Source: Octopus sinensis
Lineage: Eukaryota
Direction: 5' to 3'
Assembly (NCBI RefSeq): GCF_006345805.1
Contig: NC_042998.1
Coordinates: 91,760,001 to 91,824,000, forward strand
DNA: 64,000 nt
Shown piece by piece: positions 37,319 to 61,101 of the stretch. Numbering within the stretch: the first letter of the stretch is position 1; every line of letters begins with the position of its first letter. The translations under genes and the position numbers were made by a program. Under the pieces are notes generated by a model, which saw only the letters and a list, made by a program, of their open reading frames with translations, had not been told where the DNA came from and ran no database searches.

Positions 37319-37372
<54 letters not shown>

Positions 37373-38490: not shown

Positions 38491-38796
38491 GTAAACCAAC
38501 ATCTCCACTGGGACCAGTGGTATATGATAATGTATCAGATAGGTTCTGTGATGTTGTTTGGAATCCACCAAGATCAGATGGAGGGTCTCCATTGCTTGGC
38601 TATATCATTGAAATGAGAGCTAGAGCCCGACCTATATGGGTCAAAGTTGGTGAAACTGATGGTAAAACAACCAAATTAACTGTTTTTGACCTTAGAGATG
38701 ACACCGAATATTATTTCAGAATTTCTGCATTTAATGAAGAAGGAGTAAGTCAGCCTTTAGAGTCAGCAGAACCTGTACAACCTCAGAAAAATATAG
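38491..38796 (+). CDS. FN3 exon 43 (6-mer class a1; G-like)
   Basis: 306 nt, phase 1-1; KPTSPLGPV...QPQKNI. Confidence 0.9.
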
Positions 38797-38986
38797 GTAT
38801 ATATTCATTTCTACTCTTAATTTTGAAAATAAATTATTATAATTAAAAATTAGCTTATTTTTAAAATGTTACTTTATTGTTTCAATAAAAGAAATATATA
38901 TTTTTAATATTCTGGTTTATTATTTCATAAATAACGATTTAAGTCTTTTTGTTACTTTATTATTTTTATTTTGTTTAATTTAATAG

Positions 38987-39289
38987 TTGTACCTGGAAGT
39001 CCTGTTGACTTAAGAACAACAAGAGTGGGATTAGATTATGTTGTTATGGACTGGAAACCACCAAAAGAGGATGGAAGATCCAAAATTACAAATTATATTA
39101 TAGAAATGCGTGAAGAAGGATCTACTAAATGGAACAAGATTGCAACAACCAAACTTGGTGAAGAATATTACAAAGCTGATTTCTTAAAAACTGGTGTTCC
39201 TTACTTTTTCGCTGTCTCAGCCCAGAATAAAGTTGGTACCGGAGAGCATGCAGAAACTACATCTGCTATTGTACCTCAAAAGGAAGCTG
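38987..39289 (+). CDS. FN3 exon 44 (b1; H-like)
   Basis: 303 nt, phase 1-1; VPGSPVDLR...VPQKEA. Confidence 0.9.
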
Positions 39290-39605
39290 GTATGTAATAT
39301 TCAATTGTTCAGTTACTTCCTTTGTATTATTATTATTATATAATCCTAATATAAATACAAATATTAAAAGAAGTGAAGATTGAATTTTATTAAAACTTTT
39401 TCCAGGAAATTTATTCAGATTTGTACTTATTGCAAATTGCTTAAAATTTTGTTATTTTTTTCTTAGAAGCAATTTAATATTAATTAGTGAAATTATTTTG
39501 AATGCCATGAGCCAATAGAAATAAATCAAATCAACAGATGTTGTTGTCAGTTATTGCAGTGAATCTGTATAATTGGAACTTGATTAAATAATTTATCTTT
39601 TTCAG

Positions 39606-39908
39606 AAAAACCATCCCCACCAATTGGACCAGTTGTTTTCAGTGATATTCAAAGAACATATTTGGCTCTTTCATGGAAACCCAGTGAACACGATGGTGGT
39701 TCTCCTATTATTTCATATATCATAGATAAAAGGGAAAGCTGGAAATCCTCTTGGACTACAATTGCTAAAGTACCATCAACTACCACAAGTTATTGTGCAC
39801 AATCATTGAAGGAAAATCAAGAATATTTCTTCAGAATCTCTACAGTAAATTCTGTTGGAAAATCTGATCCTTTGATATCAGATGCTGTTATTCCAAAGAG
39901 TCCATTCA
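39606..39908 (+). CDS. FN3 exon 45 (c1)
   Basis: 303 nt; KPSPPIGPV...RESWKSSW...PKSPF. Confidence 0.9.
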
Positions 39909-40931
39909 GTAAGTTTTGTAATATCTGATAGCTTTCTTTTAAAATACTTCCTACTAAAATGGATAGATGGGTGAATAGTTCTAAGATCAATTATGACAGC
40001 TTTTAAATGTTGTGTTGCATGTATCAGGCAGCACCTGCTTAAAAACAATAACAAAAAATCAGTCACATTTAGTGAAGAGATGACTATATTATGAGTCAAA
40101 AATGGATTCTACATGAAGTATTCAACAGCCAGGAAATGGGACACTGATGCATAGAAATTATATTTATAAGTCCACAATATTGTATTGTATCTTTTGGGCT
40201 TGTGACTACTATATTACACTCTATTTCAGGGATTAAACTTTTGCAATCCTAGAGCAAGGTAAAGCATAGAATGAAACAGTGTAATCCTTAAACCTCTCGA
40301 GATGTTGATTATGTCATATTTCTGTAGAATACATTATACATATAATCTGTAGTTGCCCCAAAATATGGAATTCTTGTCCTTATACTTTATATTATCCAGT
40401 GTGTTTAATGGTTATTATTATAATGTATAAGTTTGTGAAGGAATGGAAGATGTCATTTTAAAAATCTCTAATTTAAGTTCTTCACTGGGTGCTCTCATTT
40501 TTCACATCGCTGTGCTTTAATTTTATTTTTATCAATTACAATGGTGTAACTGTGTGTGATAATATCAAAGAAATTTTTAATGAAGTTTTGGCTATAGAAA
40601 AAGTTTTAAATTACTGAAGTTGTAAAAATATTATTAAAGATATAAAGTTAAAAATGGTAATATTACTCCATCTTTTTTTTCTGATATGATCATTGATTAT
40701 GAGCTGACATTGTACTCTTGTGCTTTATTTATTAAGCACTTTTCTAATAGAGGGATATTTTGTTAAGGAAGCAGATGTAAAAATAAAAAATTAATGTGGA
40801 GAGAGTGTGATTAGTAAATAAATACAGTAATGGGAATAGAAAGCAATTTTTATAAAATTTTTAGAAGTCTTTATGAATATTATGTTCCAAGATTGGGAAT
40901 ATTACAATAATTTCTGTTTATCATTTAACAG

Positions 40932-41237
40932 GTGTACCTTCAGCTCCTGAAGGTCCTCTGATTGTTTCTGATGTCACTGCTGATTCAGCTGTGATATCTT
41001 GGAAACCTCCAACGGACACTGGTGGTCTAGCACTTACAGGATATGTTGTTGAACGCCTTGATAAGAGTAGATCAACATGGCTTACTGCAGGTAGAATTGG
41101 ACCAAAACTTACAGCTTTCTGTGTGCAGAATCTTCTTGAAGGATGTGATTACATCTTCAGAGTAATTGCAGAAAATCCTGAGGGTTTCAGTCCTGCTTTA
41201 AAATCTTCTGACTCCATCAGGACAAAACGTCCAAAAG
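40932..41237 (+). CDS. FN3 exon 46 (d1)
   Basis: 306 nt; VPSAPEGPL...RTKRPK. Confidence 0.9.
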
Positions 41238-41982
41238 GTAAATATTTTTAAAATTTAAAAGCAAGTTGTTGTTTTCTATTTGTTTATTATTTTTATAATA
41301 TAACAATTAAATCATTTATACATAAATACCAAGATATCATTCCTATAGTTTATAGAATATATGTATAATATATGTGTTTATAACATTTTTGTACTTCTGT
41401 ATAACAATAAATAGTTGGGTTTTCTTATCTTCTTTATTCTTAACTACTATTAGTGGAGCTTTATTAAGGAATTTCTTCCAAATGTTAAGAGTTCTAATTT
41501 GGGAATAATTTCTGAATATGTTTCTTTAATTTTTAATTTTAATACAGTTAATTAAATGCTTATTTAAATGTATTATTGATAAAAGAATGTTAACTTGATC
41601 TATGTTTTGGATTACAAGAACTCTGTCAGGCTATTCACATAGATTTACAGTTACATATATTAGTCATCAATTAAATATTTTAAGTTTTTAAGGAATGTTT
41701 CCATTTGAAGTTATAGTTTAGTGTGTTACTTGAAAACTGCAAAGAAAATTATGAAACATTATGTCTGTTTAAAATGAAATATTTTTCTGCTATATTAATT
41801 TACAATATTTTGGGTTTTTGATAAATATGGAGATTAACTTCATTACATCATTGATGGATATGTCAAATTATTTCAGTAATAAACTTAGTGATTTAGGAGA
41901 CTCCAAGTTAAATGAGCCTAGCAATCAGATAGACTCTAGACAAACTCATGGCTAAATTATTGCTTTAAATTTTTTATTCCAG

Positions 41983-42282
41983 AGGCTCCAGGAGTTGTCG
42001 ACTATTTGGAATACTCTGATATGACAGCTGATTCATTAATTCTTCACTGGACCCGACCATCAAAAGATGGTGGTAGTTCTGTCAGTAACTACGTTATTGA
42101 ATCCAAACTTGAAGGAAGCGATGATTGGCATAAAGTAACATCTGTTGAAGGTCACCACACCAAATATAAGGTTAAGAACCTTGAAGAAAATAGCAAATAT
42201 ATATTCCGTATATCTGCTATTAATGAAATTGGTTCTGGTCATCCTGTTCAATCGGATCCTGTTTTAGTTAAAGGACCAATTG
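41983..42282 (+). CDS. FN3 exon 47 (e1)
   Basis: 300 nt; APGVVDYLE...LVKGPI. Confidence 0.88.
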
Positions 42283-42724
42283 GTATGTATATTCATAGAA
42301 ATTTTTATTTAATAGAATAAACATGCCTCTAAAGTGTTCAATACCTAAAATACTAATATATTTATTTCGTTTTCATCTCTTATATAAAATCTATGATAGT
42401 CATACAAATGACAATACTTTAAATGTTTCTGCAAACTATAATAATTATATTGATAAGACATTTTTTTATATATCCTAATTCATATCTGTAAAAATGCCTT
42501 AACTTTTTGTAAATTGCAAAAGACATTATATTTATTCTAAATATATTTATATGGCAGTCTCTGTAAACAAAAGAAACTATTGTTTCTAAACAATTGTAAA
42601 GTATAAAAATAAAAAGAAACCCTATTTTATGCTAAAGAGTAAGTTTGATATTTAGTATGAAAGTTAGGTAATTTACTCTTCTTTAACAATCACTATACTA
42701 TGGATTTTACTTGGATGTTTACAG

Positions 42725-43027
42725 CAACTCCAGATGCACCAACAGGTCCACTAAAGGCAGTTGAAGTTCAAAGCCAGTCAATTACAATTCAATGGGAACC
42801 TCCTAAACATAATGGTGGTTCTCCACTGACAGCATATATTATTGAATTCAGAAATGCCAAACGAGTTGGCTGGGATCTTGCTGATGAAATTGGAGCCGAT
42901 AAGACAATATTTAAGATCAAAAAGTTAATTAAGAATAATGACTATTTCTTCAGAGTCTTTGCTAAAAACAAAGCTGGTATCAGTTTGCCTTTGGAATCCA
43001 AACTTTTCACAGCTAAAGATGCTTATG
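42725..43027 (+). CDS. FN3 exon 48 (f1)
   Basis: 303 nt; TPDAPTGPL...AKDAY. Confidence 0.88.
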
Positions 43028-43651: not shown

Positions 43652-43957
43652 GTCCTCCATCAAGTCCTGTTGGACCATTGAAGCTAAGTGGTGTTACAGA
43701 CAGCTCTGCTGATCTGGAATGGAATCCTCCTGAAAGTGATGGTGGGAAACCAATTACTGCATACATCATTGAATACCGAGGTGTATGGCGTACCTCTTGG
43801 ACCAAGCTTGCAGAAGTCAGTTCAACTACTTTTCGGTATACTGCCACTAATTTGGTAGTAGGAAAAGAATACCAATTCCAAGTTTTTGCTGTCAACAGTG
43901 AAGGGTATAGTTCTCCATTAATTTCAGCAGAAACGGTGAAACCAAGAGAACAACCGG
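43652..43957 (+). CDS. FN3 exon 49 (a2)
   Basis: 306 nt; PPSSPVGPL...KPREQP. Confidence 0.9.
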
Positions 43958-44372
43958 GTAAAAAATTATTAAGATTTTTTTTAATATTTTGATTTGTTGG
44001 TAAATTTACAAATATGCAATACATACATTGGTTTTAACATTAAGTTATAGATTTATAGACAATTTTTGCTAGTACTTACCAGATAATAAGAGGAAAAGGT
44101 TTGATTACATGCTATAGTGAGTAGTGAGGCAACTTGATAAGGATAAATGAATCATGAAAGTTATTCAAATCATATATGAGGAAGTTCAAAGTAGAGATGT
44201 ATTTCACAAAAGACTCAGTTTAATTGGATTAGAATTGATAATTATGTTGCATTAAATCATACAAATTTATATATGTAGTTGACAGAATACTAAAGTTTTT
44301 AAACTAACATTTCATATAATTAAAAATTTTGTATAAAATTTGTAATTTCTACTTTCTTATTTTTGTTTTCAG

Positions 44373-44675
44373 AAAAGCCAGGTCCTCCATCTCATGTAAC
44401 AGTTACCAGTGTTGGTAAAAATGATGTTACAATTCAATGGGGTGCACCACGCAACGATGGTGGTTCCATGATAACTAGGTACCACATCTCCTTGAGTAAA
44501 TGTTCCCGAACGTCCTGGGATAAGGTTACTACTGTGAAGTCTTTCGTTAGTGAATATACATTCACTGATTTAGAAGAAGGTGTGGAGTACTTTTTTGGTA
44601 TTGCAGCAGAAAATGACATAGGAGTTGGGCAAATGCGTAAAACTGAAGAGGCAATTAGGCCTAAGAAACAGCTTG
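44373..44675 (+). CDS. FN3 exon 50 (b2)
   Basis: 303 nt; KPGPPSHVT...RPKKQL. Confidence 0.9.
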
Positions 44676-44978
44676 GTAAGTTAAAAATAAATTGCTGGTT
44701 TATTACCCAGTTTACCTTACGATATAAAATCTAGAATCAAAATTAATCAAAATTATATTTCATTGAAAAAAGAATAAAAATTGATAGTTGTAATAAATAC
44801 CAAGTATTTAAGAATTTAACTACTCTTATTTATTATCTCACGATGTTTAAAATTAATCGGTTCACCTATTTGTTTTGTATTTTACATTATACTATTAATA
44901 CTTTGGAGTATAACAATACAGTAAATAAAACATGTTAAATAGAAACTTCGATAAAAATGATTTCTCTCCATTTTTCAG

Positions 44979-45284
44979 AACTTCCTGCTCCTCCGGAAGG
45001 TCCTTTGAAAGTGACTAATGTTCAGAGTAACCAAGTTACACTTTCTTGGAAATCTAGTCCATATGAAGCCCACAAACCTGTTGACAATTATATAATTGAC
45101 AAACGGGAAAGCTGGAAATCTTCATGGGGATTCTATTCTCGTGTTAAAGCAGATACCACTACAACCTGTGTAAAGCAGCTTAGAGAAGGACAAGAATACT
45201 TCTTTAGAGTATATGCAGAAAATATTATTGGATATTCAACAGCCATTGAAACTGACCAAGGTGTTATTCCTAAGAGTCCACACA
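44979..45284 (+). CDS. FN3 exon 51 (c2)
   Basis: 306 nt; LPAPPEGPL...RESWKSSW...PKSPH. Confidence 0.9.
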
Positions 45285-45497
45285 GTAAGTAAAATCATTT
45301 TTAGATTCAAGAGCCTATAAACCTAAACTTACTGTGTATATTATTATATAATTCAAAACAACAATATTAATTAAAAAATAAGTCATTTTAATTTTCCAAA
45401 CAAGTTACCTTAGAAAACTAACCAAAAGAACATTTAAAAATGAAAATATAAAACGTTTTTGTGTAATCAATCAAACAATATTTTTTTTAACCCACAG

Positions 45498-45803
45498 GTG
45501 CTCCTTCTGCTCCTGAAGGACCTTTAACTGTATCTGATGTCACAGATTCATCAGCAACCATAAAATGGAGACCACCTCTTTCAGATGGTGGACTACCAAT
45601 TATTCACTATATCATTGAATATAAGGTTGATATCTGGGGAAGCTGGATGAAAGCAGGTAAAGCTGACTATGAGGAAAACAAATACAATGTTAAAAACCTC
45701 AATGAAGGAAAGCAATACTATTTCAGAGTTTCTGCTGAAAATCCTCAAGGTATCAGTCCACCATTGGCAACTATTGATCCAATTGTTCCAAGAAAAGAAC
45801 CAG
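45498..45803 (+). CDS. FN3 exon 52 (d2; absent from the + ORF track)
   Basis: Translated by hand, open, 306 nt; APSAPEGPL...VPRKEP. Confidence 0.9.
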
Positions 45804-45957
45804 GTAATTATTGTTATTAAATTATGGTGCATTTATTGATTTTAGTGGAAATTATTGGTCATTATTATATTATTCCATCTATTAATGGTAATAGGCATTC
45901 TACCATCAAAGGTTTAACTTTGTAATAAATTCCAAAAACTTTTTTTCAAATTTCCAG

Positions 45958-46257
45958 AACCCCCATCATCACCAGTTGGACCTGTAAAATTCATTGATGC
46001 AACAATCTCATCAGTTACTTTGGGATGGCGTACACCAAGAGATGATGGCAGATCAGCTATCACTGGCTATAAAATATACCTCTATGTGGATGACAAGTGG
46101 AAATGTATTAAAACTGTTGATGGAAATACATTTAAATACAAGGTTGAAGACCACATCAAAGAAGGTGGCAAATACTTTTTCAGAATAACAGCTGTCAATG
46201 CTTTAGGAGAAAGTACTCCACTTGATTCTGATATGTATGCTCCTAAGAAAGAGAAAG
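45958..46257 (+). CDS. FN3 exon 53 (e2)
   Basis: 300 nt; PPSSPVGPV...APKKEK. Confidence 0.9.
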
Positions 46258-46864
46258 GTATTATACAAAGATGTATTCTTGTTATCATATTTTCCCAACT
46301 TTGCATCATCTGGCACTTTCTTGATCAACTGCTTTTACATTCAAGCTCCTATATATTTAACAGATTTGTTGATATATTTATGTGAAAATACATTGCTTTT
46401 GTTTTATTAATTTTGAAAATAATAAATAATTGACCATGAGTCCAACATCCTAGCTACTAGGTACATGCCTTCATATATATTGGGCTTCTCATTAATTAAC
46501 AAAAGACTGGGATTTATAATTATAAAATGGTCAAAAAGGAATTTAAATCTTTAAAATATTAAATACTGTTTTATACCTTAAATTTATCACTTGGTTTTCT
46601 TAAAGCAAATTGTCATCTTTTAAATTCCAAATGCTCTAGTAGATATTCAATGTTAACATTGTTACAGAAATCTAAGGTATCATTGCATTTAATATTAAAA
46701 GTACTTACGTTGAACCTGAATTACTTGTTGATGAACTAAAAAAAGAATTCAGCATTAGTTATAATTGCAATTCTATAATGAAATCTTTCTTTAACACTGT
46801 TTATCTTTATATACAATGAATGTATTATTTAAAGTATTATTGAGAATCTCTCTGTCCTTTCCAG

Positions 46865-47164
46865 TTGTACCATCAGAGCCAGTTGGTCCTATCGTTGTAA
46901 GTAATATCCAGAGAAGTTCAGTAGTTATTGAATGGAAACCACCTGTTCAAGGTCATCCTCTTACTGCTTACATAATTGAGCGTAAAGAAAAGACAAGATC
47001 TTTCTACAGTAAAGTACAATCAGTTGATGAAAGCATAAATAAATTATCTATAACAAATTTGATAGAAGGAAATGAATATTTCTTCCGAGTTATTGCTGAA
47101 AATGAAGTTGGTCCTGGTAAACCTCTTGAAATGGAAGACCCAGTTTTGATTAAGAGCCCTTACA
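46865..47164 (+). CDS. FN3 exon 54 (f2)
   Basis: 300 nt; VPSEPVGPI...IKSPY. Confidence 0.9.
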
Positions 47165-47662
47165 GTGAGTTATTTACATTTTTGTTAATTAAATATAAAC
47201 TATCACACATGCTCATATCCATACACATATATAGACACTACACAGCTATGCATATATGCATGGCTGTGTGATTAAGAGGTTTGCTTCACAGTCTTAGACT
47301 CATTGCTATTACCTGGCACTTTGGGAAACTGTTTTCTTTGGCTGACAAATGCTTTGTAAGTGAAATTAGTTGGCAAACACTATAGAAACCAATTGAATTT
47401 CGTGTGTGTGTGTGTGTGTGTTTGTGTGTGAAAGTTATCATAACTGCTTCTTAAATGAGATTGCCTGAACAGAATAAAGTGTTGTTATAGTTACATTCTT
47501 AGTGAATGTAAATTTCCAGTGATCTGTACTCTTGAAATAGTGAATAAACCCTGCTGAAAAGGGTTAGCAATGGAAAGAACACCCAGTTGTAAAAATACTA
47601 CCTCAAATAAATACCATCCAATTTATGTTAACATAGAAAAAGAAGCATGAAACAAATACATG

Positions 47663-47700
47663 AATATATATATATATGTATGTATGTATATGTATGTATG

Positions 47701-47733
<33 letters not shown>

Positions 47734-47770
47734 ATATATATATATGTGTGTGTGTGTGTATATATATATA

Positions 47771-47812
<42 letters not shown>
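47663..47812. repeat. Compound (TA)n/(TG)n microsatellite
   Basis: Read directly; similar tracts at 8030-8069, 8395-8428, 19428-19530, 31452-31497, 37290-37380, 53712-53770 and 58404-58435. Confidence 0.95.
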
Positions 47813-47813
<1 letters not shown>

Positions 47814-47962
47814 GATTATGGATTGTATTATTTACATGTTACATTTACATTACTTCTTATTATATTAGTTTTATATCATCTGTTGAACTGAAAAGACTTG
47901 TAACTTTAAAAGATATATAAATCATTTTCTATACTCATATGTCTTCTTTGTTTTTCCAATAG

Positions 47963-48268
47963 AAAAACCATCAGCTCCAGAAGGTCCTTTGGTTCAAAGC
48001 AATTTGACTGAAGAATCGGTAGATCTTAAATGGAAACCTCCTACTGATGATGGTGGCTTACCAATTACACATTATGTTATTGAAGTACGAGAAATTAATA
48101 GACAAACATGGAGCTTTATGTGTGAAATAAGATCAACTTCCACAAATTACACTGTAACTGGATTGGTACCTGGAATGCAGTACTTCTTCAGAATTTCAGC
48201 TAAGAATGATGAAGGGCAAGGACCTCCTCTCACATCAGACCAACCAGCTAGACCTGTGAAAGCAGCAA
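47963..48268 (+). CDS. FN3 exon 55 (a3)
   Basis: 306 nt; KPSAPEGPL...RPVKAA. Confidence 0.9.
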
Positions 48269-48589
48269 GTAAGTATTTTGATATTGAAAATATATAGTAT
48301 GTTACTAAATTCTTAGATAAATTTAAAAGAGCCACATTGATATAGAGAGTTTCAATCCTCTGAAATTGGTAAACTGATGCAAGACAATGACAGTATCATA
48401 AGATATAATTTTAGCTTTTTGAAAACAAATCTACAAATTGGAAATTATCAAAACACTAGAAATCTAATATTTCATTTTAAATTCTCTGAATTCCTTATTA
48501 ATGTCAAATATCAAATGTTGTTTAAATTGGTGTGTCTATTATCATAATTCAAATTGATATGATATATAACTATTTTCTCCTCATTATAG

Positions 48590-48892
48590 CTGTTCCCAAA
48601 TCACCAGAATTCTTAGGTATCAAGAGTATTGGAAAAGATCTTGTTACTATGGAATGGGGAAAACCATTAGATGATGGTGGATCAGATATCACAAATTACA
48701 TCGTTGAATACTGCCCAGAAGGAAAAGATAAGTGGATTCAGGCTGCTAAAGTTGGAGCTTTCGTAAACTATTATGTTGTTACTGACTTGGAAACTGAAAA
48801 ATTATATTATTTCGGCATTTCTGCTGAAAATGAAATTGGTCAAAGCTGCAGGCTAGAGACACAAGGACCAATAAAGACAGTGAAACCAATTG
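48590..48892 (+). CDS. FN3 exon 56 (b3)
   Basis: 303 nt; VPKSPEFLG...KTVKPI. Confidence 0.9.
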
Positions 48893-49383
48893 GTAATTAA
48901 AATTGTTTTATCTAAATAAAAGTGATTTATGTATGCATGTTATATGCAATTTGCATTGTATGTGTGTATGAGAGACAGAGAGAGAGAGAGAAGTGATGAC
49001 TTTAATTGTGCCAAAGCTGTTTTACAGAATATCATTACATTTTAGTTTTGAATAGTATAATTTAACGATAAAATTCAGTTGTAACCCAAAATGGTAAACA
49101 TTTCACTGTTTATCAATAATTTCTAATTGGTTATGGTCAGTATTGATTTTAAGATAAAATAGTAATTTTTCTTTTTTGTCATATATGTGTAGGCATTTTT
49201 CAAGGTATAACATAATGAATATGAAAAATGTTCTTGATAGTTATGAACTATAGGATATCTATTACGTTTATTTATAGCTTCGACATTAAAGATTTAGTAG
49301 ATAAATAACTAAAATATAGACAAATTAAAAACTAAATTTAATTGCTTGAAAATATATTTCATAATCAATATATTTTATTACAG

Positions 49384-49689
49384 AGGTACCTACAGCACCT
49401 GAAGGACCGCTTGTGATTGAAAATGTCAAGCGTAATTCTGTTGGGCTTACATGGAAAGCTAGTAAAGATGATGGTGGTTCTCCAATTTTGTCATACATTA
49501 TTGAACAAAGAGAATCATGGAGAACAAGTTGGCAATATGTTGATTGTGTCTCACCAAAGACCTTTGAGTATGTTATTAGAAAACTTCAAGAAGGTCAAGA
49601 GTATACATTCCGAATTATTGCTGAAAACAGTGTTGGCGTATCATCTCCATTAGAGGCCAAGAAACTTATCAAGATTCTAAGTCCGTTTG
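49384..49689 (+). CDS. FN3 exon 57 (c3)
   Basis: 306 nt; VPTAPEGPL...RESWRTSW...ILSPF. Confidence 0.9.
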
Positions 49690-50336
49690 GTAAGTATTCA
49701 TTGTGAAAAATCTAACTATAAAAAATTCCAAGCTGTTATTTTTATTTTTATATAAAATAAATATTTTTTATACTATTTACGTAATTTATTTTCTGCTTTC
49801 TTAACCCTTTATCATTCATATTACTCTGTCAAATGTAAGGCTCATATATTGACAGTTACAAATTAATGGTGCATAATTTGTAGCTTTGATATATCGATTA
49901 TGTGATTGCTTACTTTTGGAATGACATTGTAGGATATGTGTGACAGAGTGGATCTGGCTAGTTTGAATATAAAACAGGTAGAATATTTGGGCCACGATAC
50001 AAAAATATGAAATATTAGTATGCTAAGTGATATGAGAGTATCAAGTTATTAAATTCACAACCCATAAATGATGGGCTGAATTCTTCATGATGTATTGCAT
50101 TATATATTTGGATTAGGCTCATAACTCTACTTATAACTAAGTTATTAATCTCATATAAAATGCTTATAATTATCTTTTATCTTTCACTTGTTTTAGTCAT
50201 TAGACTGTGGCCATAGTTATTTTTACATGATTTTAATTTATTCATATACCACCAAAAATATTGTTTTAAAATAACATAAAAATTGATGCTTTCATTAGAT
50301 ATTTTATTTAATTAATGAATTTCTTTCTAATTTTAG

Positions 50337-50639
50337 CTCCACCTGATCCTCCAGCACATCTTCGTATTGAAGATATAACTAGTAAATCAGTAACCTTAGA
50401 ATGGGATACTCCACAGTTTGATGGAGGTAAACCTATTAGTGGTTATGTTATTGAACGGCGAGACCTTTCTCAACTTTCATGGCTTCAAGTTGGAGAAACT
50501 GGTACATTGCACACAAGATTCATTGCAGAAAAATTGGTTGAAGGAAAAGAATATCAGTTCCGAGTCTTTGCTGTTAACAGTGAAGGCCGCAGCAAACCAA
50601 ATGAAATAAAGGAGCCTATTATACCATTGAAAGTTGCTA
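50337..50639 (+). CDS. FN3 exon 58 (d3)
   Basis: 303 nt; PPDPPAHLR...IPLKVA. Confidence 0.9.
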
Positions 50640-50804
50640 GTAAGTAAAACTAGTTACCCTGGTTTTCTTATTTGAATGTTTTCCATTACTCAAAGTTTAA
50701 ACATTTTAAAAAGTATTTTAGAATTAAATGCATCTCATATCTCTTAGTTACTACTATTTGTATATTATTTATTCATTTATTTATTTATTATTTTTTTTTT
50801 GTAG

Positions 50805-51098
50805 CTGTTCCTTCAGCTCCTGGTGGACCAGTTATTTTCAAATCAATTACAGCAACATCTGTGACACTGGAATGGCTACCTCCTAAGAACAATGGTGGCG
50901 CTTCTATCAAACATTATCGTATTGAATATGCTACTGATACTGCTGACTGGAAAACAGTTGACATAAGTGATGTTGAGTATATCAGAGTACCTGATCTTCA
51001 AACTGATCAGCCATATTACTTCCGTATTACAGCAATAAATGCAGTTGGACAGAGCAAATACTTGGAATCAGACATTTTCATTCCTAAAAAGCCCCTGT
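50805..51098 (+). CDS. FN3 exon 59 (e3)
   Basis: 294 nt; VPSAPGGPV...IPKKPL. Confidence 0.9.
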
Positions 51099-51675
51099 GT
51101 AAGTTTACTTCTATCTTCTTTATTTCTAATTTACTATAGATAATTAAATATCACTCAATCAAGAAATATTGTTTCTACATTTTTATTGAAGTACACTGCT
51201 TTTGTTTCAATTAATTTTAAAGAAATAATGGAGAATTTAGTAAAATAACCGTCGTTATTAAATTAGTGATTGGAACATAAATTAGTGTGAAACTTTGATG
51301 TATGATTTTAACTCAGATACCTTTAAAACAGCAAGTTTTGTATCATAGAATCAAAAGCTGTCCCTGGTGAGTTGCTATCGGAAGGGTTTAGATTTATCCA
51401 GTCACATATTTTGGGCATCTACAGAACTTAAGAATTTTGGAATATTATGTAATCTCATTTATTAGTTTATGGAATTAAAATCTATCTAGTCTTAAGTATT
51501 TAGCTTAATATTGAATGATATCAATAAATCAATAAGTTCATGCTTTAATATATCTTATATAATTAATTTTTTCATTTGTATTTATAATAAAAACTGAGAA
51601 AAACAGTATCACAACAAAATAGAATTTTTGTACTTTTGAACCTTGAATTATAAACAAACCAATTTTATTTATTAG

Positions 51676-51978
51676 GTCCACCTAATCCTCCATCTGGTCC
51701 TATCAGCATTGTTGAAATTACCAACGAGGCTGTCACTCTTGAATGGAAGCCTCCAACAGATGATGGTGGATGTGCTGTTACAGAATATGTTGTTGAAAAA
51801 CGTGAAGCAAACAGGATGATGTGGCAGTTTTCAGAAAGAGTCTATGATGATACTTTTGCTACCATTAAAAACCTTTCTGAAGGCGATGCTTTCTTCTTCC
51901 GTGTGCTTGCATTGAACAGAGTTGGATGCAGTGCACCATTAGACATGGATGTACCTGTTATTATCAAGAGTCCATTTG
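51676..51978 (+). CDS. FN3 exon 60 (f3; absent from the ORF track)
   Basis: Translated by hand, open, 303 nt; PPNPPSGPI...IKSPF. Confidence 0.9.
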
Positions 51979-52356
51979 GTAGGTTATTTTTATAAATTCA
52001 ACATCATATTGGGTTATCTCATTTAACACAGTCGTTTTTATCTATGTAAATTATATTTTAGTATAACTTATTCCCTTTTGATAAGACATTGTGTATTTTT
52101 TTGTTATGTTTCATTATTCATTTGAATAAAAGAGTAGATCTGTGCAATTGAAAGTGCACCAAATGTGGTGCATAACAATTCTTAATACCAAGTATCATGG
52201 TCTGAAATTGAAATACAGCTAGAATTGTAACACACCATGATAATTCATATCCACTATACCTTTTTTAAAACGTTAAACTTAGTCAACAGAAATAATTCTT
52301 CATGTCTATATGAATACTTTGAATTATGTACTAATATAGAATAATTTCTTTTACAG

Positions 52357-52662
52357 AACTTCCATCAGCTCCAACTGGTCCTCTGAAAATATCTCATATC
52401 ACTGAGAACTCTGCTGATTTAGAATGGGCCCCACCAAGATATGATGGTGGAACTCCTATTACAATGTATGCCATTGAAATTCGAGAGCTTAGACGTAAAC
52501 TCTGGGGCAGAGCAGGAACAGTGGATGCATACACTACCAGATTCACTGCTAGAAATCTTGTTGTGAACTATGAATACTTCTTCAGAGTTAGAGCCATCAA
52601 CAAAGAAGGAGAAGGACCTGCTCTTGAAGGATACGACAGTGCTTGTCCAAAGATGAAGCTTG
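52357..52662 (+). CDS. FN3 exon 61 (a4)
   Basis: 306 nt; LPSAPTGPL...CPKMKL. Confidence 0.9.
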
Positions 52663-52811
52663 GTAAGAAAATATTTTTTTTAACGTTTTATTTTCATCAA
52701 AATGATAAAATAGGATTTGAAATAATTTTAATGTTATCCAATTCCACATTTTGTTTTTTAAAAATATATTATAATGTGTTTTTAATACATATGTATCTAA
52801 CTATATATATA

Positions 52812-53705
52812 CTTGGCAAACTTGGATGTCCAGATCACTTTGTAACTATAATTAAATCATTTCATGATGAGATAGAGGAGGCTTGGGTCAATGTTGGTGG
52901 TGGCATGGCAGGACTCATTTCTGAAAAGAATGATGTCAAGCAGGGTGACATCCTTGCCCCAACTCTCTTTTCTTTGTACTTCGCTACTGCTTTTACTCAT
53001 GCTTTTACTAAGGTTAGCTCTCTGAGAATATATGTTAGGTATCGATCTTCTGGCCACCTCTTTAATCTGCTGATTTGCTGCCAATTCAAAAGTTTTCCAG
53101 TCTCTTCATGACCTTTATGTAGATGACTGTGACTTAGTCACTCATACAGAAGATGACATGCAAATACTTATGAATCATATTCCTGCTTCTTGCAAGGCAT
53201 TTGGACTCAGCACTAGCCCTGGATAAGACTGTTGTAATGTTCCAGCCTGCACCAGGAAATCCATATGGAGAACCAGCTATCTTGGTTGAAAGAACAATTC
53301 TGAAAGTGGTAGACAAATTTGTCTACCTGGGCAACACATTCAGCCATTCTTGCACCCTGGATGATGAAATATCTTTCAGGTTGCAGAGAGCAACTGATTC
53401 CTTTCAGTCTATTCAGTCTCATGTCTGACCCCAGCATGGCATCACATAGCAAACAAAAATTGCTGTGCACCATGCATGTATACTGACATTGCTCCTTTAT
53501 TCATGTGAGACATGGACCCTTTACAAACATCATGTAAGGGCCCTTGAATGCTTTCATCAGAAATGTCTCAGAGACATTCTGAATGTTGGCTGGACCTTAA
53601 AAACTTCAGACACACAGGTCCTGAGAACAGCTGATATCTTGAGTATTGAGAGGCAATGGTGCACAAGAACTGGTTACATTGGACTGGACACCTTATTATT
53701 AGAAT
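52812..53705 (+). mobile_element. 5'-truncated, frameshifted RTE-type non-LTR retrotransposon (reverse transcriptase remnant), intron 61
   Basis: Translations LGKLGCPDHFVTIIKSFHD...VKQGDILAPTLFSLY, LYVDDC (degenerate YADD), VVDKFVYLG and LLLYSCETWTLY...FHQKCLRDIL are typical RTE RT motifs. Confidence 0.85.
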
Positions 53706-53708
53706 GAA

Positions 53709-53745
<37 letters not shown>

Positions 53746-54011
53746 ACACAAGCACACACACACACACATTCATACACATTTTAATCATGCACTTAAACGA
53801 ATAGCTTAAAAGCCATAGAGTCATTAATGTAGAATCTTATTTCCAAAAGCTGTTGAAATTAAAACAGAACATTTTCTTATTTCATTTCTTCTCCTGAGTC
53901 CTTAAGAACTAATATGTATTAAAAACATAATAAACAAATTAAATGTTTTCTACTTTGTTTTGAATATGTATATTATTATTTCTGAGTATCTTGCTTTCTT
54001 TTTTCTTCCAG

Positions 54012-54308
54012 AATTGCCTTCATCTCCAGTAGGTGTCAAAATCACATCTATTGGATGCGATAATTGCACTATTGAATGGAGAGAACCTAGATTTGATGGT
54101 GGTGATAGCATAAAATCTTATAACATCTACCTCTGCCAAGATGGCAACTGGGCAAAAATAGACACAGTGGACTCCTTTGTCAATATGTATACTGCTAAAA
54201 AATTACGCAGTGACAAACTTTACTTGTTTGGAGTTGCAGCTGAAAATGAAGTTGGTTCAAGTAAAATTGTACCTGTTCCAAATGCTATTACTCCTGAGAA
54301 GAAAATAT
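54012..54308 (+). CDS. FN3 exon 62 (b4)
   Basis: 297 nt; LPSSPVGVK...TPEKKI. Confidence 0.9.
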
Positions 54309-54929
54309 GTAAGCTTACTTTTGTATTTCCTACATTCATTTTTATTTATTTTTTTTTTGTTATTCATTTAAGTTAAGTACTTATATTTAAGTTATATTCT
54401 GTTGAAATTTTCAGTATTTAAAATATAAGCTTCCAATTATGATTATGTCATGTTAAATTCTATAATAATATAGGAGATATAATAAGTTTGTTAGTTCACA
54501 ATTTTGAAGGGAACAATATCATTTAGACTTTATATATCTAATGACAATTGTGGTACAAAATTCAATTTAATCATAGAAAGATGATCCTCTTACAGAGGAT
54601 TATTAAAATTTTTAAGGTTTTGGTTTTTGAACATTTTTGAAAATTATCCTTGTTAGCACTGCACTATTGTGTCACTAAAATAGTCTTTGAGTTTGCTTGT
54701 GCCAGACCTTTCTTTAACTGCAAGTAAGCCTTGTATGGCAACAATAGATACTTTTGTACTGGTGTTGTGAATGATCAATACAGATCAGTCTCAACATTCC
54801 TGCATCTTTTTAAGTCAAATTAAATTAAAAAAACTTAGATTTAGTTTTGGTAATGTTAATTTGAAATAATGCTTTATATTTTATAATACACTTTTGCAAG
54901 TATTTAAATTTATGTACATGTATTTGCAG

Positions 54930-55235
54930 ATGCTCCATCAAGACCTATTGGACCATTATCTGTAAATAACATAACAAAATCATCGGCTGTGATATCATGG
55001 AAGCTTAGTGAAAATTATGGTGGATCACCAATCATAAGTTATATCACTGAAAAGAAAGAGACTTGGAAGTCTTCATGGGCAATGGGTGAAAGGGTTCCTG
55101 CAAATACTACATCATGTGAATTAACTTTCCTCTCTGAAGACTGTGAATATCATGCACGAGTGTTTGCTGAAAACAGCGCTGGGCTGTCTGAACCATTGAT
55201 GACTACTGAACCATTCTTGGTCAGAAGTCCTTACG
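54930..55235 (+). CDS. FN3 exon 63 (c4)
   Basis: 306 nt; APSRPIGPL...KETWKSSW...VRSPY. Confidence 0.9.
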
Positions 55236-55359
55236 GTAAGTTCTTGCTGATAAACAGTTTGAATCAACCCATGCCAGCATGAAAAGGTGGACATAAAATA
55301 ATGATGATAATGATGTAATTTTGCTTAAGGAAAACTACAAATATAATTTATCATAAATA

Positions 55360-56150
55360 CATAGGAGTGGCTGTGTGGTAAGTAGCTTGCTTACCAACCA
55401 CATGATTCTGGGTTCAGTCCCACTGCGTGGCACCTTGGGCAAGTGTCTTCTACTGTAGGTTCAGGCCAACCAAAGCCTTGTGAGTGGATTTGGTAGTGAG
55501 TTATGGCTGTATCCTACACCAGTTTTGCATAACCAGCTCCAGCCCATTTAAAAGTACCTTGGATCATAGGACGATTTGCTGTGATTACCTTGGATCATAG
55601 GGTGACCTGCTGTGCTTGAGGAAACCTATTGAGTCAAGTACAACAACAACAAAATAAAAATCAAATGTAAATTGTAGTTGTGATACCTATGCTGGTGGCA
55701 CATAAAAAAGCACCATCCAAATGTGGCCGTTGCCAGTTTCCTCTGGCCCCTGTGCCAGTGGCAAGTAAAAAGCACCCACTATCACGGAGTGGTTGGCATT
55801 AGGAAGGGCATCCACTTGTAGAAATCTTGCCAGATCAGACTGCATTCTGATGCAGCCTCCTGGCTTCCCAGACCCCGGTCAAACCGTCCAACCCATGCTA
55901 GCATGGAAAACAGACGTTAAATGATGATGTATATATATATATAATATGTATATGTTTGTGTGTCTGTGTTTGTTCCCCAACCATCACTTGACAACCGATG
56001 CTGGTGTGTTTATGTCCCTGTAACTTAGCAGTTTGGCAAAAGATACCGATAGAATAAGTACTAGCCTTACAAAGAACAAGTCCTAGGGGTTGATTTGTTT
56101 GAATAAAGGTGGTGCTCCAGCATGGCCACCGTCAAATGCCTTAAACAAAT
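55360..56150 (+). mobile_element. SINE family 1 interrupted by a nested (ATG)n-tailed element
   Basis: SINE head 55360-55495, insert of about 55496-55929 ending atgatgatg, then the SINE 3' half resumes to about 56150. Confidence 0.65.
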
Positions 56151-56278
56151 AAAAAAATATTTTTTTGCATTGATAGTATGCTTTTGAATTAATATATGTA
56201 TATAGTATTCATATCATTATTTTGATATAGTCTTTTATGTTGCTTACACTGTACATTCTTTGACATCTCGTCTTACAG

Positions 56279-56578
56279 GTAAACCATCTGCTCCTCGAGA
56301 TCTGGATGTAAGTGAAGTTGGTGCTGACTTTGTTACTCTGAAATGGTCTGCACCAAAGAGTGATGGAGGAAAACCTATAAATTCCTATTCGATTGAGAAA
56401 CGAGATATGACTCGTATGATATGGGTCCATGTTACTGATGTTAAACCAGGATCAAGAGAATTTACTATCAAGAAACTTTTGGAAGGACGAAATTATCAAT
56501 TCAGAATCTCAGCTACAAATGAGGAAGGGGAAGGATCTTTTGCACAGTCTGATATTGTCAGCTGTGAAAAGCCTCCTG
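56279..56578 (+). CDS. FN3 exon 64 (d4)
   Basis: 300 nt; KPSAPRDLD...SCEKPP. Confidence 0.9.
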
Positions 56579-56799
56579 GTATGTATAACACTCAACAAAT
56601 ATTATGCTAATCATAGTAAATTTTCATAACAATTTTCATTTAGAATTCTTTTGAAATTCCATGCAATATATGAATGTTTTGGATAAAAAAATTAATTCTA
56701 ATGAAAGATTAATTTAAATATTTTGATATTGTTTTTCATTGTTTGTTTAAATTTCTGGTTTCCATTGAATGAAAATATGATTTTCTTTTCTCTCTTCAG

Positions 56800-57099
56800 A
56801 AAAACCAGATATTCCTTCAGGTTCTCTTCAACCTTGTCATGTAACAGAATCTTCTGTTACAATGGACTGGTTGCCTCCATATTATGATGGTGGTTCAAGA
56901 TTATTGTATTATATCCTGGAAATTAAAGAATCTGATTCAGATAAGTGGTTAGAGGTTACTAGAACACTAGATACCTCATGCCTCATACGTGGTCTTTTTG
57001 AAGGAATGGAATATGATTTCAGAGTGAGTGCTGTTAATGCCATTGGTGCTAGCAGACCACTGCCTACAGAAAAACCAGTAATTCCAACCAGACAATCAG
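56800..57099 (+). CDS. FN3 exon 65 (e4)
   Basis: 300 nt; KPDIPSGSL...IPTRQS. Confidence 0.88.
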
Positions 57100-57347
57100 G
57101 TATAATAAAAGATTCATAATTAATTTTAATAAATGTAATTAACTTTTTTCTTAATTTTTAACTCAGTTTTGAAGTGCAGACCTATGGTTGTGATGAATTT
57201 GTAAAATCAAAAACAATAATTGTGAAAGATATATAACAATCAGCAAATTTCGTGAAATTAAAATATTTACCCAGTTAAAATTAATCAGATATTTCAAATA
57301 TGTATTTCACCTATTCTTTAAAATCTCATTAAATTTTCTATTTTCAG

Positions 57348-57653
57348 AAACTCCTTCAATTCCACTTGGACCACTTAACGTTTCTGATATAACTCGTAAT
57401 TCCTCGACACTATCCTGGAAACGTCCCAGTGATGATGGTGGTTGTCCAATTATTGGATATCTGATAGAAAAATTGGATCTTGTTTGGGGCTTTTGGGTTA
57501 GAGCAGCATATGTTCCCGCAGAAGATACAAATTGCACTCTGCATGATTTAGCTGAAAACCATAGCTACAATTTCAGAGTTTATGCTCATAATGAAATTGG
57601 ATACAGTGAGCCTTTGGAATTGAGGGCCCCTGTGAAAATAAAGAGCCCATATA
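57348..57653 (+). CDS. FN3 exon 66 (f4)
   Basis: 306 nt; TPSIPLGPL...IKSPY. Confidence 0.9.
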
Positions 57654-58069
57654 GTAAGTTATTCTTTTATATTATTTATCGACATCAATACCTCATATAC
57701 TTATCCGTTCACAAATCTGACTTTATAAATTTCTTGTTTATTTCCATTTTTTAGTATGTGAATAAAAATTTTTTTACTAATAGCTAAAAAGAGCAAGTCA
57801 CATCGTTATTTCTAGAAAACAAGCTTCCTCCACATTACTTACATGTGTGTGTGTGTGAACACATATGTATATATGTAGTTCATTGAAACAAGTTCCATGC
57901 TACTGTGACCTTTTGAGGAAAAAACCATATGAAAATTGTTATGGCATAAAAATGGAGTTGACAGATAAACACAGAGTTTCAATAAAACCATATACTCTCT
58001 TATATATTAAGCACTAATTGCTCATTTATTCAACACATTTCAATGTTCATGTGTTTGTGTGTGTATGCC

Positions 58070-58190
58070 ACAGAGCTGCACCAGGTTTCAGTCTGATTTT
58101 GGCTTGGTTTCTATGGCTGGATGCACTTCCTAATGCCAAACACTCTAAGAGTGTAGTGGTTGCCTTTTATGCATCACTGGCACAGGTGCT
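58070..58190 (-). mobile_element. Partial SINE/LINE tail, reverse
   Basis: gctgcaccaggtttcagtctgattttggc...ggctggatgcacttcctaatgcc...gagtgtagtgg. Confidence 0.55.
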
Positions 58191-58400
58191 TTTGTGATGA
58201 CTGTAAAACTCTGGTCACTGATTTTGGTCAAGATTGGTGACTGCTTGGAGAAACCACAGTGCTTTAAGTATGCTCTTTCACTCTTTTCATACTAATCTAT
58301 CTGAAACTGCTCTAACATTTATGATATAAGCCTCCTGTTTTAAACTGATCTAAAGTTCCTTCCCTCAAAATTTTGTTTTAATATATCTTCTAAACACCAT

Positions 58401-58437
<37 letters not shown>

Positions 58438-58488
58438 TATATTTATATGCATAAATATGTAATTTGGATAATTTAAAACTATTTTCAG

Positions 58489-58785
58489 ATAAACCTTCAG
58501 CACCACAGAACTTGCATGTAACAGAAGTAACTGAAGATAGTGTCACACTGGAATGGACACGACCTCTTGATTTTGGTGGTACAGACTTGTATGGCTATGT
58601 GATTGAAAGATGTGATGGTAGTTCAACAAATTGGAGAGCAATTGGTAGAACCACACAAACAATGCATATGGTTGATGGTTTACAAGAAGGCCGTCAATAT
58701 AGATTCAGAGTGGCAGCAGAAAATGTTGAAGGCATTGGTAATGCTGTATGGCTTGCCTGTCCTGTTATGCCACGTAGACCAATTG
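58489..58785 (+). CDS. FN3 exon 67
   Basis: 297 nt; KPSAPQNLH...MPRRPI. Confidence 0.9.
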
Positions 58786-59311
58786 GTAAGATTTTATTTT
58801 TTTATTTATAAATTTTACAGCCTTTTTTTAGAATATTTAAATGGATTTAAACTTGTTAGAATTAATTTTGTAATTCATAAATTAAACATATTTCATCAGT
58901 CTGTACATTTTAGATTTGACAAAGTTTTGTAAGAAACATGATTATAAATATTTAAATTCTAAGCATTTTTCATCATTTGTATTGGTAGAAGTACACAGTT
59001 CTCAACAGCGGTTCTCATCCTTGGACTATATGACCCTTGAGGGCTCATATATGATTTTGTTGTTAGAATTCATCTGCACAAAATATTTTAAACAATTATT
59101 TTGTATACAATTCCTAATAATATTTAATTGTAAAAATATATGATCTTTTAAAACATCAAATGGTTAGGAAGGTCCTTTTGAATAAAATAGAATTCAAAGG
59201 TTTAAAATTTTCAACTAATTTTCAAAGTCTTGAATAAAATGCCTTCATATAGAAATGCCATCAAAAATATTAAAGTAAATTTCTTATAATAACTTTGCTT
59301 TTTGTCAATAG

Positions 59312-59611
59312 AACTTCCTGGAGTACCTGAAGATCTTGATATTGGACAAATTACTCAATGGTCTGCTTCCCTTTACTGGAGAAAACCAATTAATGATGGT
59401 GGATCTCCAATTACCACCTATGCAATTGAACAGAGTTGGGCAGGTTCTGACTGGACTGAAATTGTTACACTGGATGCTGCTGTACATTCATATACAGTCC
59501 GAGACCTCTATGAAAATGTTGAAACATATTACAGAATCAGAGCAAAGAATGTTGCTGGTTGGGGAGACTACAAAGAATTACCTCAAACAGTTGTACCTAA
59601 GAAGGCCCCAG
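59312..59611 (+). CDS. FN3 exon 68
   Basis: 300 nt, donor G|gtttgt; LPGVPEDLD...VPKKAP. Confidence 0.88.
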
Positions 59612-60063
59612 GTTTGTTTAACATAGAATCTTTCTCTTCAATTGTATATATATATATATTTTTTTTTTTTCAATATTTTCAATAGTTAACTAATCTGCAG
59701 TACATAAAGCTTGAGGAAGATATACATGATTTTGAAGAACCAATAAACATGATTTTTATATTGAAATTGAAACTTTGATATTGGTTTATATAAATATGAA
59801 AGCAAATGATAGCTAAATTTGCAATTATATGAATGACAAATAAAAAGAATTAAATTTTCTTGCAATTAATAACCTATCTAATTTCATTCAAAGAAATATC
59901 CAGAACTTTGATATAGTTGTGTGATTAAGAAGCTGTGTGTGGCTTTAGGTTTGATCGCATAGTATTGAATCTTGGGCAAGTCTTAGGCAGAGACTGTGCA
60001 TGCAGAAACATTTGTGTGTGTGTATGTGCGCACACGCATGCATGTGTGTGTTCATGTAGTTTT

Positions 60064-60286
60064 TTCTTGTTTCTGTCATTAGACTGTAGCCATGCTGTCG
60101 TACCACCGTGAAGGGTTTAATTGAGCAAATTTACCCCAGTACTTATTTTTTAAAGTGTTGTACTTATTGTTTTTGTTTCTTATTGCTGAACTGCTAAGTA
60201 ACAGGGACATAAACAAAACAACACTGGTTGTCAAGCAGTGGTTGGGGACAGACACAAACACACATATACATAGACACATACACATG

Positions 60287-60326
<40 letters not shown>

Positions 60327-60487
60327 CACACAATAGGCTTCTTCCAATTTCCATCTATTAAACCCAGTCACAAAGCTTTGGTCAGCCTGAGGCTATAGTA
60401 GAAGGTACTTGCTGAAAGTAACATGCAGTCAGATTGAACTCAGAACCATATTGCTGGGAAGTAAGTTTCTTACCACACAGCTATGCC
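60064..60487 (-). mobile_element. SINE family 1, reverse orientation
   Basis: Reverse complement of the 2884 copy, with internal (TA)n. Confidence 0.7.
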
Positions 60488-60795
60488 ACATGTGTGTATG
60501 TTTGTCAGTACCTATAGCTGTGTTTTTGTTTACTTATGCAAATAAGGTATTATGTCCTTTTATGTCAAGGGGCAACTTAGTAATCTAAAAATAAGAAATC
60601 AATAAAATAAATTCCAAGCTAGCATAAGTACTGAGTTTGACATAATTGTTTAATATCCTTGAAAGCAGTGCACCCCAAATGGCTACAGTCCAATGAATGA
60701 AGCTAATAACTTAATAAAATAAATTAAACATATATTACAAGTGAGTAAAAATGAAATTAATGCTTATACCATTTTCGTTTTTGTTTTTCGTCCAG

Positions 60796-61101
60796 GTTGC
60801 CCATCAGTTCCTATTGGGCCAATAATTATCAAAGATGTTAATGAAGACAATGTTACCATTGAATGGTCACCCTCTGTTATGGATGGTGGAGCTCGTATAC
60901 TCGGTTATATTGTTGAAAGGTTTGACAGACGAAACAGTGCCTGGCGAAAATGTACTCGTGTGTCTGCTGATTCTACTAATGCTTATATCAGAAGCCTTGT
61001 ACCCGGAGATTCTTACCAATTTAGAGTCATGGCTTTTAACGAAGTTGGACTTAGTCTTCCATTGGAAACTGAGATTATTGTTCTTCCCAAAGCATCAGCA
61101 G
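60796..61101 (+). CDS. FN3 exon 69 (last FN3 exon in the window)
   Basis: 306 nt; CPSVPIGPI...LPKASA. Confidence 0.9.

Follow-up and report, generated by a model that had tools for sequence, protein, structure and literature searches.

Architecture of the locus

The window considered here, a stretch of 64,000 nucleotides from Octopus sinensis (contig NC_042998.1, positions 91,760,001 to 91,824,000 of the forward strand), is AT-rich (GC content about 0.32) and codes for the distal portion of a giant protein, rod-like in shape and built of titin-type FN3 domains only. The array falls into two zones, the first with a super-repeat of nine domains (D1-D42) and the second with a super-repeat of six (D43-D66), and ends with three further FN3 domains (Table 1). 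A profile derived from the window's own open frames, when run against the 64 kb, returned 69 FN3 domains, all on the + strand and with E values of 1e-23 to 1e-41; these are numbered D1 to D69, in keeping with the exon numbers of the initial annotation of this DNA (D43 is 38491-38796 and D69 ends at 61101). Every one of the 69 exons carries a single FN3, is 294-306 nt long, and is bounded by an AG acceptor and a GT donor with phase 1 at both ends. No linkers separate the domains, and the spliced D1-D69 form a stop-free chain of 6,994 codons. Three domains compared with Pfam fn3 (PF00041), D45, D50 and D61, scored 51-56 bits, where the cut-off is 25. The 69-domain array contained no Ig, kinase or other module, and the 64 kb as a whole no Ig or kinase. 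The window start probably falls inside the array.

A search of solved structures placed titin C-zone chains from the thick-filament cryo-electron microscopy entries 8g4l and 8q6t at the top (E about 1e-117), followed by MyBP-C and myomesin and then by receptor-type and adhesion FN3s, including those of receptor phosphatases, contactins and Dscam, at E values of 1e-11 to 1e-18. Both zones are under purifying selection (pN/pS about 0.3, with synonymous divergence, dS, above 1 against L003, a locus of a related species in ENA ERZ21867824).

Two super-repeat periods and the switch between them

A beat of three domains persists through both zones, as the initial annotation had proposed, and upon it a longer period is laid that differs between them. 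Mean pairwise identity in D1-D42 is 0.665 at a lag of nine domains and 0.60 at a lag of 18; it falls to 0.46 where the lag is another multiple of three, and to 0.34 where it is out of phase. In the significance test whole triplets were shuffled, such that the three-domain phase was preserved; with this permutation a period of nine in D1-D42 has a z of 7.7, and on a neighbor-joining tree of these domains labels modulo 9 require 8 steps, the minimum possible. In D43-D69 the highest mean identity is that for lag 6 (0.389), ahead of lags 12 (0.376), 9 (0.371) and 3 (0.348), and the remaining lags lie at about 0.32. The period-6 signal within the window is thus small but real: of the 35 possible partitions of D43-D66 that with period 6 comes first (z 3.2-3.7), and for period 9 z is about 0. 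Taken phase by phase, the split that isolates D44, D50, D56 and D62 ranks 1/35, as does that of D45, D51, D57 and D63, and that of D43, D49, D55 and D61 ranks 3-4/35. The neighbor-joining tree of D43-D66 requires 2 steps for labels modulo 3 (the minimum), 8 for labels modulo 6 (minimum 5, and the best seen under permutation) and 16, which is worse than random, for labels modulo 9. A nine-domain period running on into zone 2 is ruled out by the last of these values and by the permutation z, and the grouping of the later exons modulo 6 rather than modulo 9, for which the initial annotation had argued, is upheld by both tree and permutations.

Identity in sliding windows of 18 domains places the change of lag from 9 to 6 at D42/D43, inside the interval of exons 42-45 where it had been anticipated, and the lag-9 signal collapses thereafter. 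When the fourth nine-domain unit is compared at lag 9 with D37-D45, identity is 48-63% at positions A-F and 38-41% for D43-D45 against G-I. It had also been suggested that exons 43 and 44 still resemble classes G and H of the nine-domain unit. This can be retained for D44, which is 41% identical to H against 35%, and finds no support for D43, which shows no preference (44% to G, 43% to A or D). Nor does the six-domain period extend over the whole of exons 43-69: it holds for D43-D66, and adding D67-D69 weakens it, with p rising to 0.05-0.07. D67 comes nearest to class 4 and D69 most resembles class 6, with no clear assignment for D68, so that the terminal triplet looks like a worn or degenerate half unit; its reading as the start of a fifth unit, that is, as classes 1-2-3, is ruled out by these same assignments.

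The lengths of individual exons vary (294-306 nt), yet their sum per super-repeat is near-invariant, at 2748, 2745, 2745 and 2742 nt for the nine-domain units and 1815 or 1821 nt for the six-domain units. A self-blastn of the window detected no similarity at the DNA level between zone-2 units.

The motifs on which the six-domain period had been proposed were picked by eye, and they fared unequally. The pattern [KR]E[ST]W[KR][ST]SW is exclusive to D45, D51, D57 and D63; by post-hoc arithmetic, four matches lying exactly six apart among 69 domains have a chance of 51/864,501. FG[IV].AEN.[IV]G does occur in D50, D56 and D62, with a further occurrence in D29, and FR[IV][ST]A[IV]N.[ILV]G in D47, D53, D59 and D65, with others in D06, D15, D18 and D42. 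The exons of the latter four domains are short, as described (300, 300, 294 and 300 nt), a property they share with D54, D62, D64, D67 and D68, which are likewise no longer than 300 nt. The pattern E[RK].D....W, which had been assigned to exons 46, 58 and 64, is off by one residue and as written has zero matches; with five dots it matches D46, D58 and D64 together with D66, D67 and D69, and is not specific.

Table 1. Features of the array, its gastropod counterpart and the interspersed repeats (window coordinates unless stated otherwise)
Feature	Position	Strand	Remarks
Zone 1, D1-D42	1835..38376	+	4 2/3 copies of the nine-domain unit; classes A-I, three a-b-c triplets
Block D4-D6 with two introns	4832..6029	+	96.8% identical over 1,199 bp to 11675-12873 (D13-D15), by self-blastn
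Zone 2 unit 1, D43-D48, classes 1-6	38491..43027	+	Most diverged unit, at the junction with zone 1; 1821 nt
Zone 2 unit 2, D49-D54	43652..47164	+	Exon map, Lottia classes; 1821 nt; related-species orthologues 67-90% identical
Zone 2 unit 3, D55-D60	47963..51978	+	Exon map, Lottia classes, L003 orthologues; 1815 nt
Zone 2 unit 4, D61-D66	52357..57653	+	Exon map, Lottia classes; reciprocal best hits D61=Lt39, D63=Lt41, D66=Lt44; 1815 nt
D67-D69, three terminal FN3 exons	58489..61101	+	Outside the six-domain period
Probable next exon after D69	63279..63882	+	About 200 aa, Q/Y/S/H/R-rich, non-domain; 216-codon open frame
Extra gastropod FN3 and tail	Lottia L001/L002 merged 37150-37446; Littorina P0002 residues 823-980		
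SINE-like repeat copies	332-557, 19133-19313, 22264-22471, 33341-33542, 35719-35898, 37056-37216, 55743-55929, 58075-58181, 61245-61381		
Second interspersed repeat family	2889-3302, 15629-15965, 36778-37060, 55363-56154, 60049-60481		

The six-domain zone in gastropods and other relatives

A protein search with D49-D54 found no close relative; the best matches, which stand ahead of titin and twitchin, are uncharacterised FN3-only proteins of Lottia gigantea, Littorina saxatilis and Elysia chlorotica. The orthologue set consists of Lottia LOTGIDRAFT_141610 and LOTGIDRAFT_141638, Littorina V1264_012463, Elysia EGW08_013891 and Lingula XP_013419362.1. On Lottia scaffold KB200919.1 there are 48 FN3 blocks (here Lt with a number), all of them on a single strand, with one FN3 per block of the size of an open reading frame. 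Reciprocal best hits with the window comprise Lt23=D45, Lt24=D46, Lt28=D50, Lt37=D59 and Lt45=D67 in addition to the three listed for unit 4 in Table 1, and since their offset is always 22, zone 2 is collinear with Lottia domain for domain, with 25 domains in identical order. The period of six is cleaner in Lottia than in the window: multiples of six (lags 6, 12 and 18) show an identity of 0.42, odd multiples of three (lags 3, 9 and 15) one of 0.38, and other lags 0.35-0.37. Between the window and Lottia, identity is 0.45 at lag 0, 0.39-0.41 at lags of plus or minus 6, and about 0.34 out of phase.

The six classes can be carried from one species to the other, and it is the comparison between species that renders the period of six robust. 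With classes defined by Lottia domains only, and the orthologue of each window domain left out, 21/24 window domains were put in the correct class (binomial p 5e-14), and likewise 21/24 within phase (p 1.4e-4); in the reverse direction, with Lottia domains assigned by window classes, the counts are 19/24 and, within phase, 23/24. In unit 1, of which Lt21-26 and L003_11-16 are the orthologues, the assignment is right for D43-D47, if only narrowly so for D43 and D44, and wrong for D48. A relaxed class-3 signature, [KR][ED].[WF][KR][STV].W, is found only in D45, D51, D57 and D63 and in Lt23, Lt29, Lt35 and Lt41, and ER[RL]D is present in 4/4 Lottia class-4 domains.

Further relatives cover parts of the array. 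Littorina P0002 is collinear with it from D62 to one domain past D69 ("D70"), L003 has a counterpart, 55-90% identical, for each domain of D33-D58, and Logan contigs cover D45-D55. The brachiopod Lingula XP_013419362.1 has a related array in which the order of class 3 followed by class 4 is kept; in a search of representative sequences with Littorina P0002 it was the only match that looked orthologous, the others being mostly ordinary titin or twitchin of amphioxus, hemichordates, insects and fish. A search of the first protein database for the protein of the window itself, or for a full-length cephalopod one, brought up matches of at most about 1,060 aa, and these were single-exon relatives only (P0121 and P0122 at 72-74% identity, P0123 at 87% and P0124 at 97%). 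Judging from the collinearity described above, the six-domain zone is ancient, and its domains have one-to-one counterparts in the gastropods Lottia and Littorina.

Immediately upstream of the FN3-only array of Lottia, and on the same strand, lie I-set Ig exons in the order Ig-Ig-FN3-FN3-FN3-Ig-Ig-FN3 (L001 1-5000). The array may form the distal portion of a larger titin-like gene of Ig and FN3 domains that has been split into several gene models. In the literature, no published description of a molluscan FN3-only super-repeat protein or of its periodicity was found, and the FN3-array gene is not mentioned in a survey of titin evolution from 2025, although octopus and oyster are among the species it covers.

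Lineage-specific period of the nine-domain zone

Successive nine-domain units show identities of 0.51, 0.60, 0.63 and 0.84, the youngest lying toward the 5' end, where units 1 and 2 are 84% identical. The near-identity of the D4-D6 and D13-D15 blocks (Table 1) indicates a recent duplication or gene conversion in zone 1; a collapsed or duplicated assembly would be an alternative source of this pair. The remaining zone-1 self-matches in the self-blastn are exon-sized, with 67-88% identity. For the older pairs, from units 2-3 onward, synonymous divergence is saturated, and D33-D42 have one-to-one orthologues in L003, so that at least the last zone-1 units are older than the split from it.

The Lottia zone upstream of the D43 equivalent comprises about 16-17 FN3s, in which identity declines from 0.63 (lag 3) to 0.56 (lag 6) and 0.50 (lag 9), a profile that corresponds to a period of three and not of nine. 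Unit counts, which the initial annotation had proposed to compare among molluscs, agree for zone 2, which has four units in Lottia as well; zone 1 has far fewer domains in Lottia. By this comparison the nine-domain period is lineage-specific, and the combination of nine and six is not one that has been conserved. The zone-1 types a, b and c are nearest to zone-2 classes 1, 2 and 6 (or 3), and zone-2 classes 4 and 5 have no zone-1 counterpart.

Relation to titin and twitchin

In titin, one domain is encoded per symmetric phase-1 exon, and the two-zone super-repeat of this protein is the textbook case of a filament template, treated as a vertebrate (chordate) solution. The titin A-band and the array have in common a linker-free giant chain of domains of about 100 aa, encoded one domain per exon, in which two zones of unequal super-repeat length adjoin and position-equivalent domains are the most alike. 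However, titin interleaves Ig and FN3 domains, whereas the array consists of 69 consecutive FN3s with no Ig; the periods are 7 and 11 in titin and 9 and 6 in the array; and in the array the zone with the longer period is the young, variable one, and no kinase lies in the window. The two titin zones of 7- and 11-domain super-repeats to which the initial annotation had referred agree with the published layout, in which the D-zone is made of -AC-ABC units and the C-zone of -AC-ABC-ABC units, the dashes being Ig domains and the 11-domain unit measuring about 43 nm (PMC10665226). An attempt to map types a, b and c onto the titin FnIII types A, B and C gave no correspondence, with nearly all array classes nearest to type A, as judged from a small reference set of 15 domains from fish titin fragments.

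With twitchin and projectin the array shares a three-domain beat, titin-type FN3s and an invertebrate setting. However, the core of those proteins is FN3-FN3-Ig with a kinase, whereas the third triplet member of the array is an FN3 and not an Ig; the array also differs from twitchin in having a higher-order period and no kinase in the window. FN3s of the true twitchin type, which show the D.FS.RW pattern (Diadema P0013), are clearly distinct from those of the array. As Ig and FN3 are not interleaved and, by the small reference set, the a, b and c types do not fall on A, B and C, the array would be neither a titin nor a twitchin, and may be regarded as a new variant of the super-repeat idea. 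The names "titin-like" and "twitchin-like" that some relatives bear are automatic annotation. The gastropod proteins share with the array the order of D43-D69 and the class signatures; they differ in zone 1, which in Lottia has a period of three and about 16-17 domains and in the window a period of nine and at least 42, and in an additional FN3 and a C-terminal motif, described below.

A model for the array and its alternatives

The present data allow a model to be proposed for the architecture, history and possible function of the array which, taken as a whole and including its reading as a thick-filament template, appears fairly probable. As to architecture and history, D43-D66 are four copies of an old six-domain super-repeat, followed by the degenerate half unit D67-D69 and then by a probable tail exon of disordered sequence, and D1-D42 are an expansion zone of a-b-c triplets that was amplified in this lineage by blocks of three triplets, a block size from which the period of nine arises. 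As zone 2 and its signatures are conserved domain for domain in gastropods, its copy number has been constant since before the split of the cephalopod-type and gastropod lineages, with zone 1 varying freely in copy number while zone 2 stayed fixed. As to function, conservation by position, an unchanging copy number and a unit length that hardly varies together point to a periodic partner, of which each of the six positions would touch a recurring feature. This partner would most likely be the myosin/paramyosin thick filament, which is suggested by the FN3 domain type and would be analogous to the filament on which the titin C-zone lies in vertebrates. Zone 2 would then serve as a fixed template segment and zone 1 as a length-variable extension, which could also be shortened by exon skipping given that every exon is of phase 1-1. 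That such a layout evolved independently of that of titin, as the initial annotation held, is plausible only, and the role of a ruler that it assigned to the array is pure inference. A more far-reaching proposal, that the array is the lophotrochozoan counterpart of the titin A-band without Ig, with a fixed 4x6 template and a variable, skippable extension whose isoform length helps to set filament length, must be considered a long shot.

Several observations weigh against this model. Within the window period 6 gives a weak signal, which exceeds the same-phase background by about 6 identity points, and the separation of class 1 from class 4 is the least clean of the splits (rank 3-4/35). The gene is incomplete at both ends within the window. 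The thick filament is linked to the array by domain type alone, and the dimensions do not readily match: the myosin repeat is 14.5 nm and the paramyosin repeat 72.5 nm, and at about 3.9 nm per domain, the spacing of the 11-domain titin unit (PMC10665226), six domains would span about 23 nm and nine about 35 nm, neither of which is a multiple of 14.5 nm. Eighteen domains, the smallest number divisible by both six and nine, would come to about 70 nm, near the paramyosin repeat, a correspondence that is for now numerology. At about 0.28 um, moreover, the 69 domains would fall far short of the 7.4-um filament of the squid arm, although this length is comparable to half of the 0.81-um filament of the squid tentacle (PMC4757648).

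The main alternative is that a six-domain block was copied four times long ago and that the period is a fossil of this event, the FN3s being constrained for their fold only. Such a history would account for the low identity between units (0.39 at lag 6) and for the small number of class-specific residues that survive a strict filter, and block duplication readily occurs in this gene, as zone 1 shows; in titin, too, differences in super-repeat conservation have been ascribed to evolutionary age and not to function (PMC10665226). However, the class signatures and their order have been kept in parallel in two lineages whose orthologues are only 45% identical, the window and Lottia each have exactly four zone-2 units, against a difference of at least 2.5-fold in zone 1, and unit length is held within 2 aa, and fold constraint alone predicts none of these features. 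The parallel retention of signatures and copy number argues against a mere fossil, which is judged unlikely while still deserving consideration. A decayed nine-domain repeat, or chance combined with post-hoc motifs, would leave no real switch to explain, and could appeal to the closeness of lags 9 and 6 within the window (0.371 and 0.389) and to the choice of motifs by eye. This is refuted, down to a negligible residue of probability, by the failure of period 9 in permutation (z about 0) and on the tree, where it does worse than random, by the rank of period 6 as best of all partitions, by the excess of Lottia lags 6, 12 and 18 over 3, 9 and 15, and by the cross-species classification (p 5e-14).

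Intracellular sarcomeric FN3s are characterized by a conserved DGG.PI..Y core, PxxP starts and absence of linkers. All three are present in the array, and they speak against a further possibility, that the protein is a non-muscle or extracellular FN3 protein whose likeness to titin reflects general FN3 similarity. The window indeed contains no Ig, kinase or other muscle-specific module, the Q/Y/S-rich tail exon belongs to no known family, and the muscle-type names of relatives were given automatically. However, titin structures match the array about 100 orders of magnitude better than do receptor phosphatases, contactins or Dscam, and I-set Ig exons lie upstream in Lottia, so that a non-sarcomeric protein seems highly improbable.

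An FN3-only giant with its own two-zone layout constitutes an independent natural experiment on the purpose of such periodicities, its four six-domain units having been kept in lineages as distant as limpets and the source of the window. It may also bear on length control in paramyosin-cored invertebrate thick filaments, for which a conserved, periodic and exon-modular protein of thick-filament type would offer reagents and predictions. In squid, the filaments of arm fibres are ten times as long as those of tentacle fibres (7.4 and 0.81 um), with identical myosin (PMC4757648). If the array were the A-band counterpart, its isoform length could help to set such differing molluscan and cephalopod filament lengths, from 0.8 um in the tentacle to 7.4 um in the arm. 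Were the protein located elsewhere than on the thick filament, a periodic partner would still be needed to account for so strict a conservation of class order and copy number.

The 3' end of the array

The splice junction between D68 and D69 is confirmed by the 97%-identical protein P0124 (UniParc UPI0006951F7D). The probable next exon (Table 1) has a phase-1 acceptor at 63277-8 that matches the D69 donor, and its end reads AG followed by GTAA, which provides either a GT donor or a TAA stop. Its open frame is conserved at 87% identity in a relative (P0123), and no Pfam family was found for 63279-63882. In gastropods, as in several further transcripts, one more FN3 follows the equivalent of D69 and is succeeded by a short tail with a conserved C-terminal motif, EYFFR[IV]YA.N. 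Neither this "D70" nor the gastropod motif was found between 61101 and 64000, where only the Q/Y/S-rich exon is present, the window stopping 2.9 kb past D69. The motif resembles a lone FN3 F-strand and occurs also in transcripts P0025 and P0072, while transcripts P0003 and P0005 end in ...R.ERAYSAY.DEPLT instead.

Introns and interspersed repeats

An Rfam scan of the whole window gave no match. Intron 61 contains, at 52800-53704, three broken open frames that by eye resemble a degenerate reverse transcriptase of the long interspersed nuclear element (LINE) type, and for which Pfam returned no family. Intronic microsatellite or low-complexity tracts at 20376-21000, 31450-31510 and 47632-47890 yield spurious open frames rich in Y, I and L. 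A second interspersed repeat family accompanies an intronic repeat of about 200 bp, which is present in both orientations at 73-86% identity and is similar in kind to a short interspersed nuclear element (SINE; Table 1).

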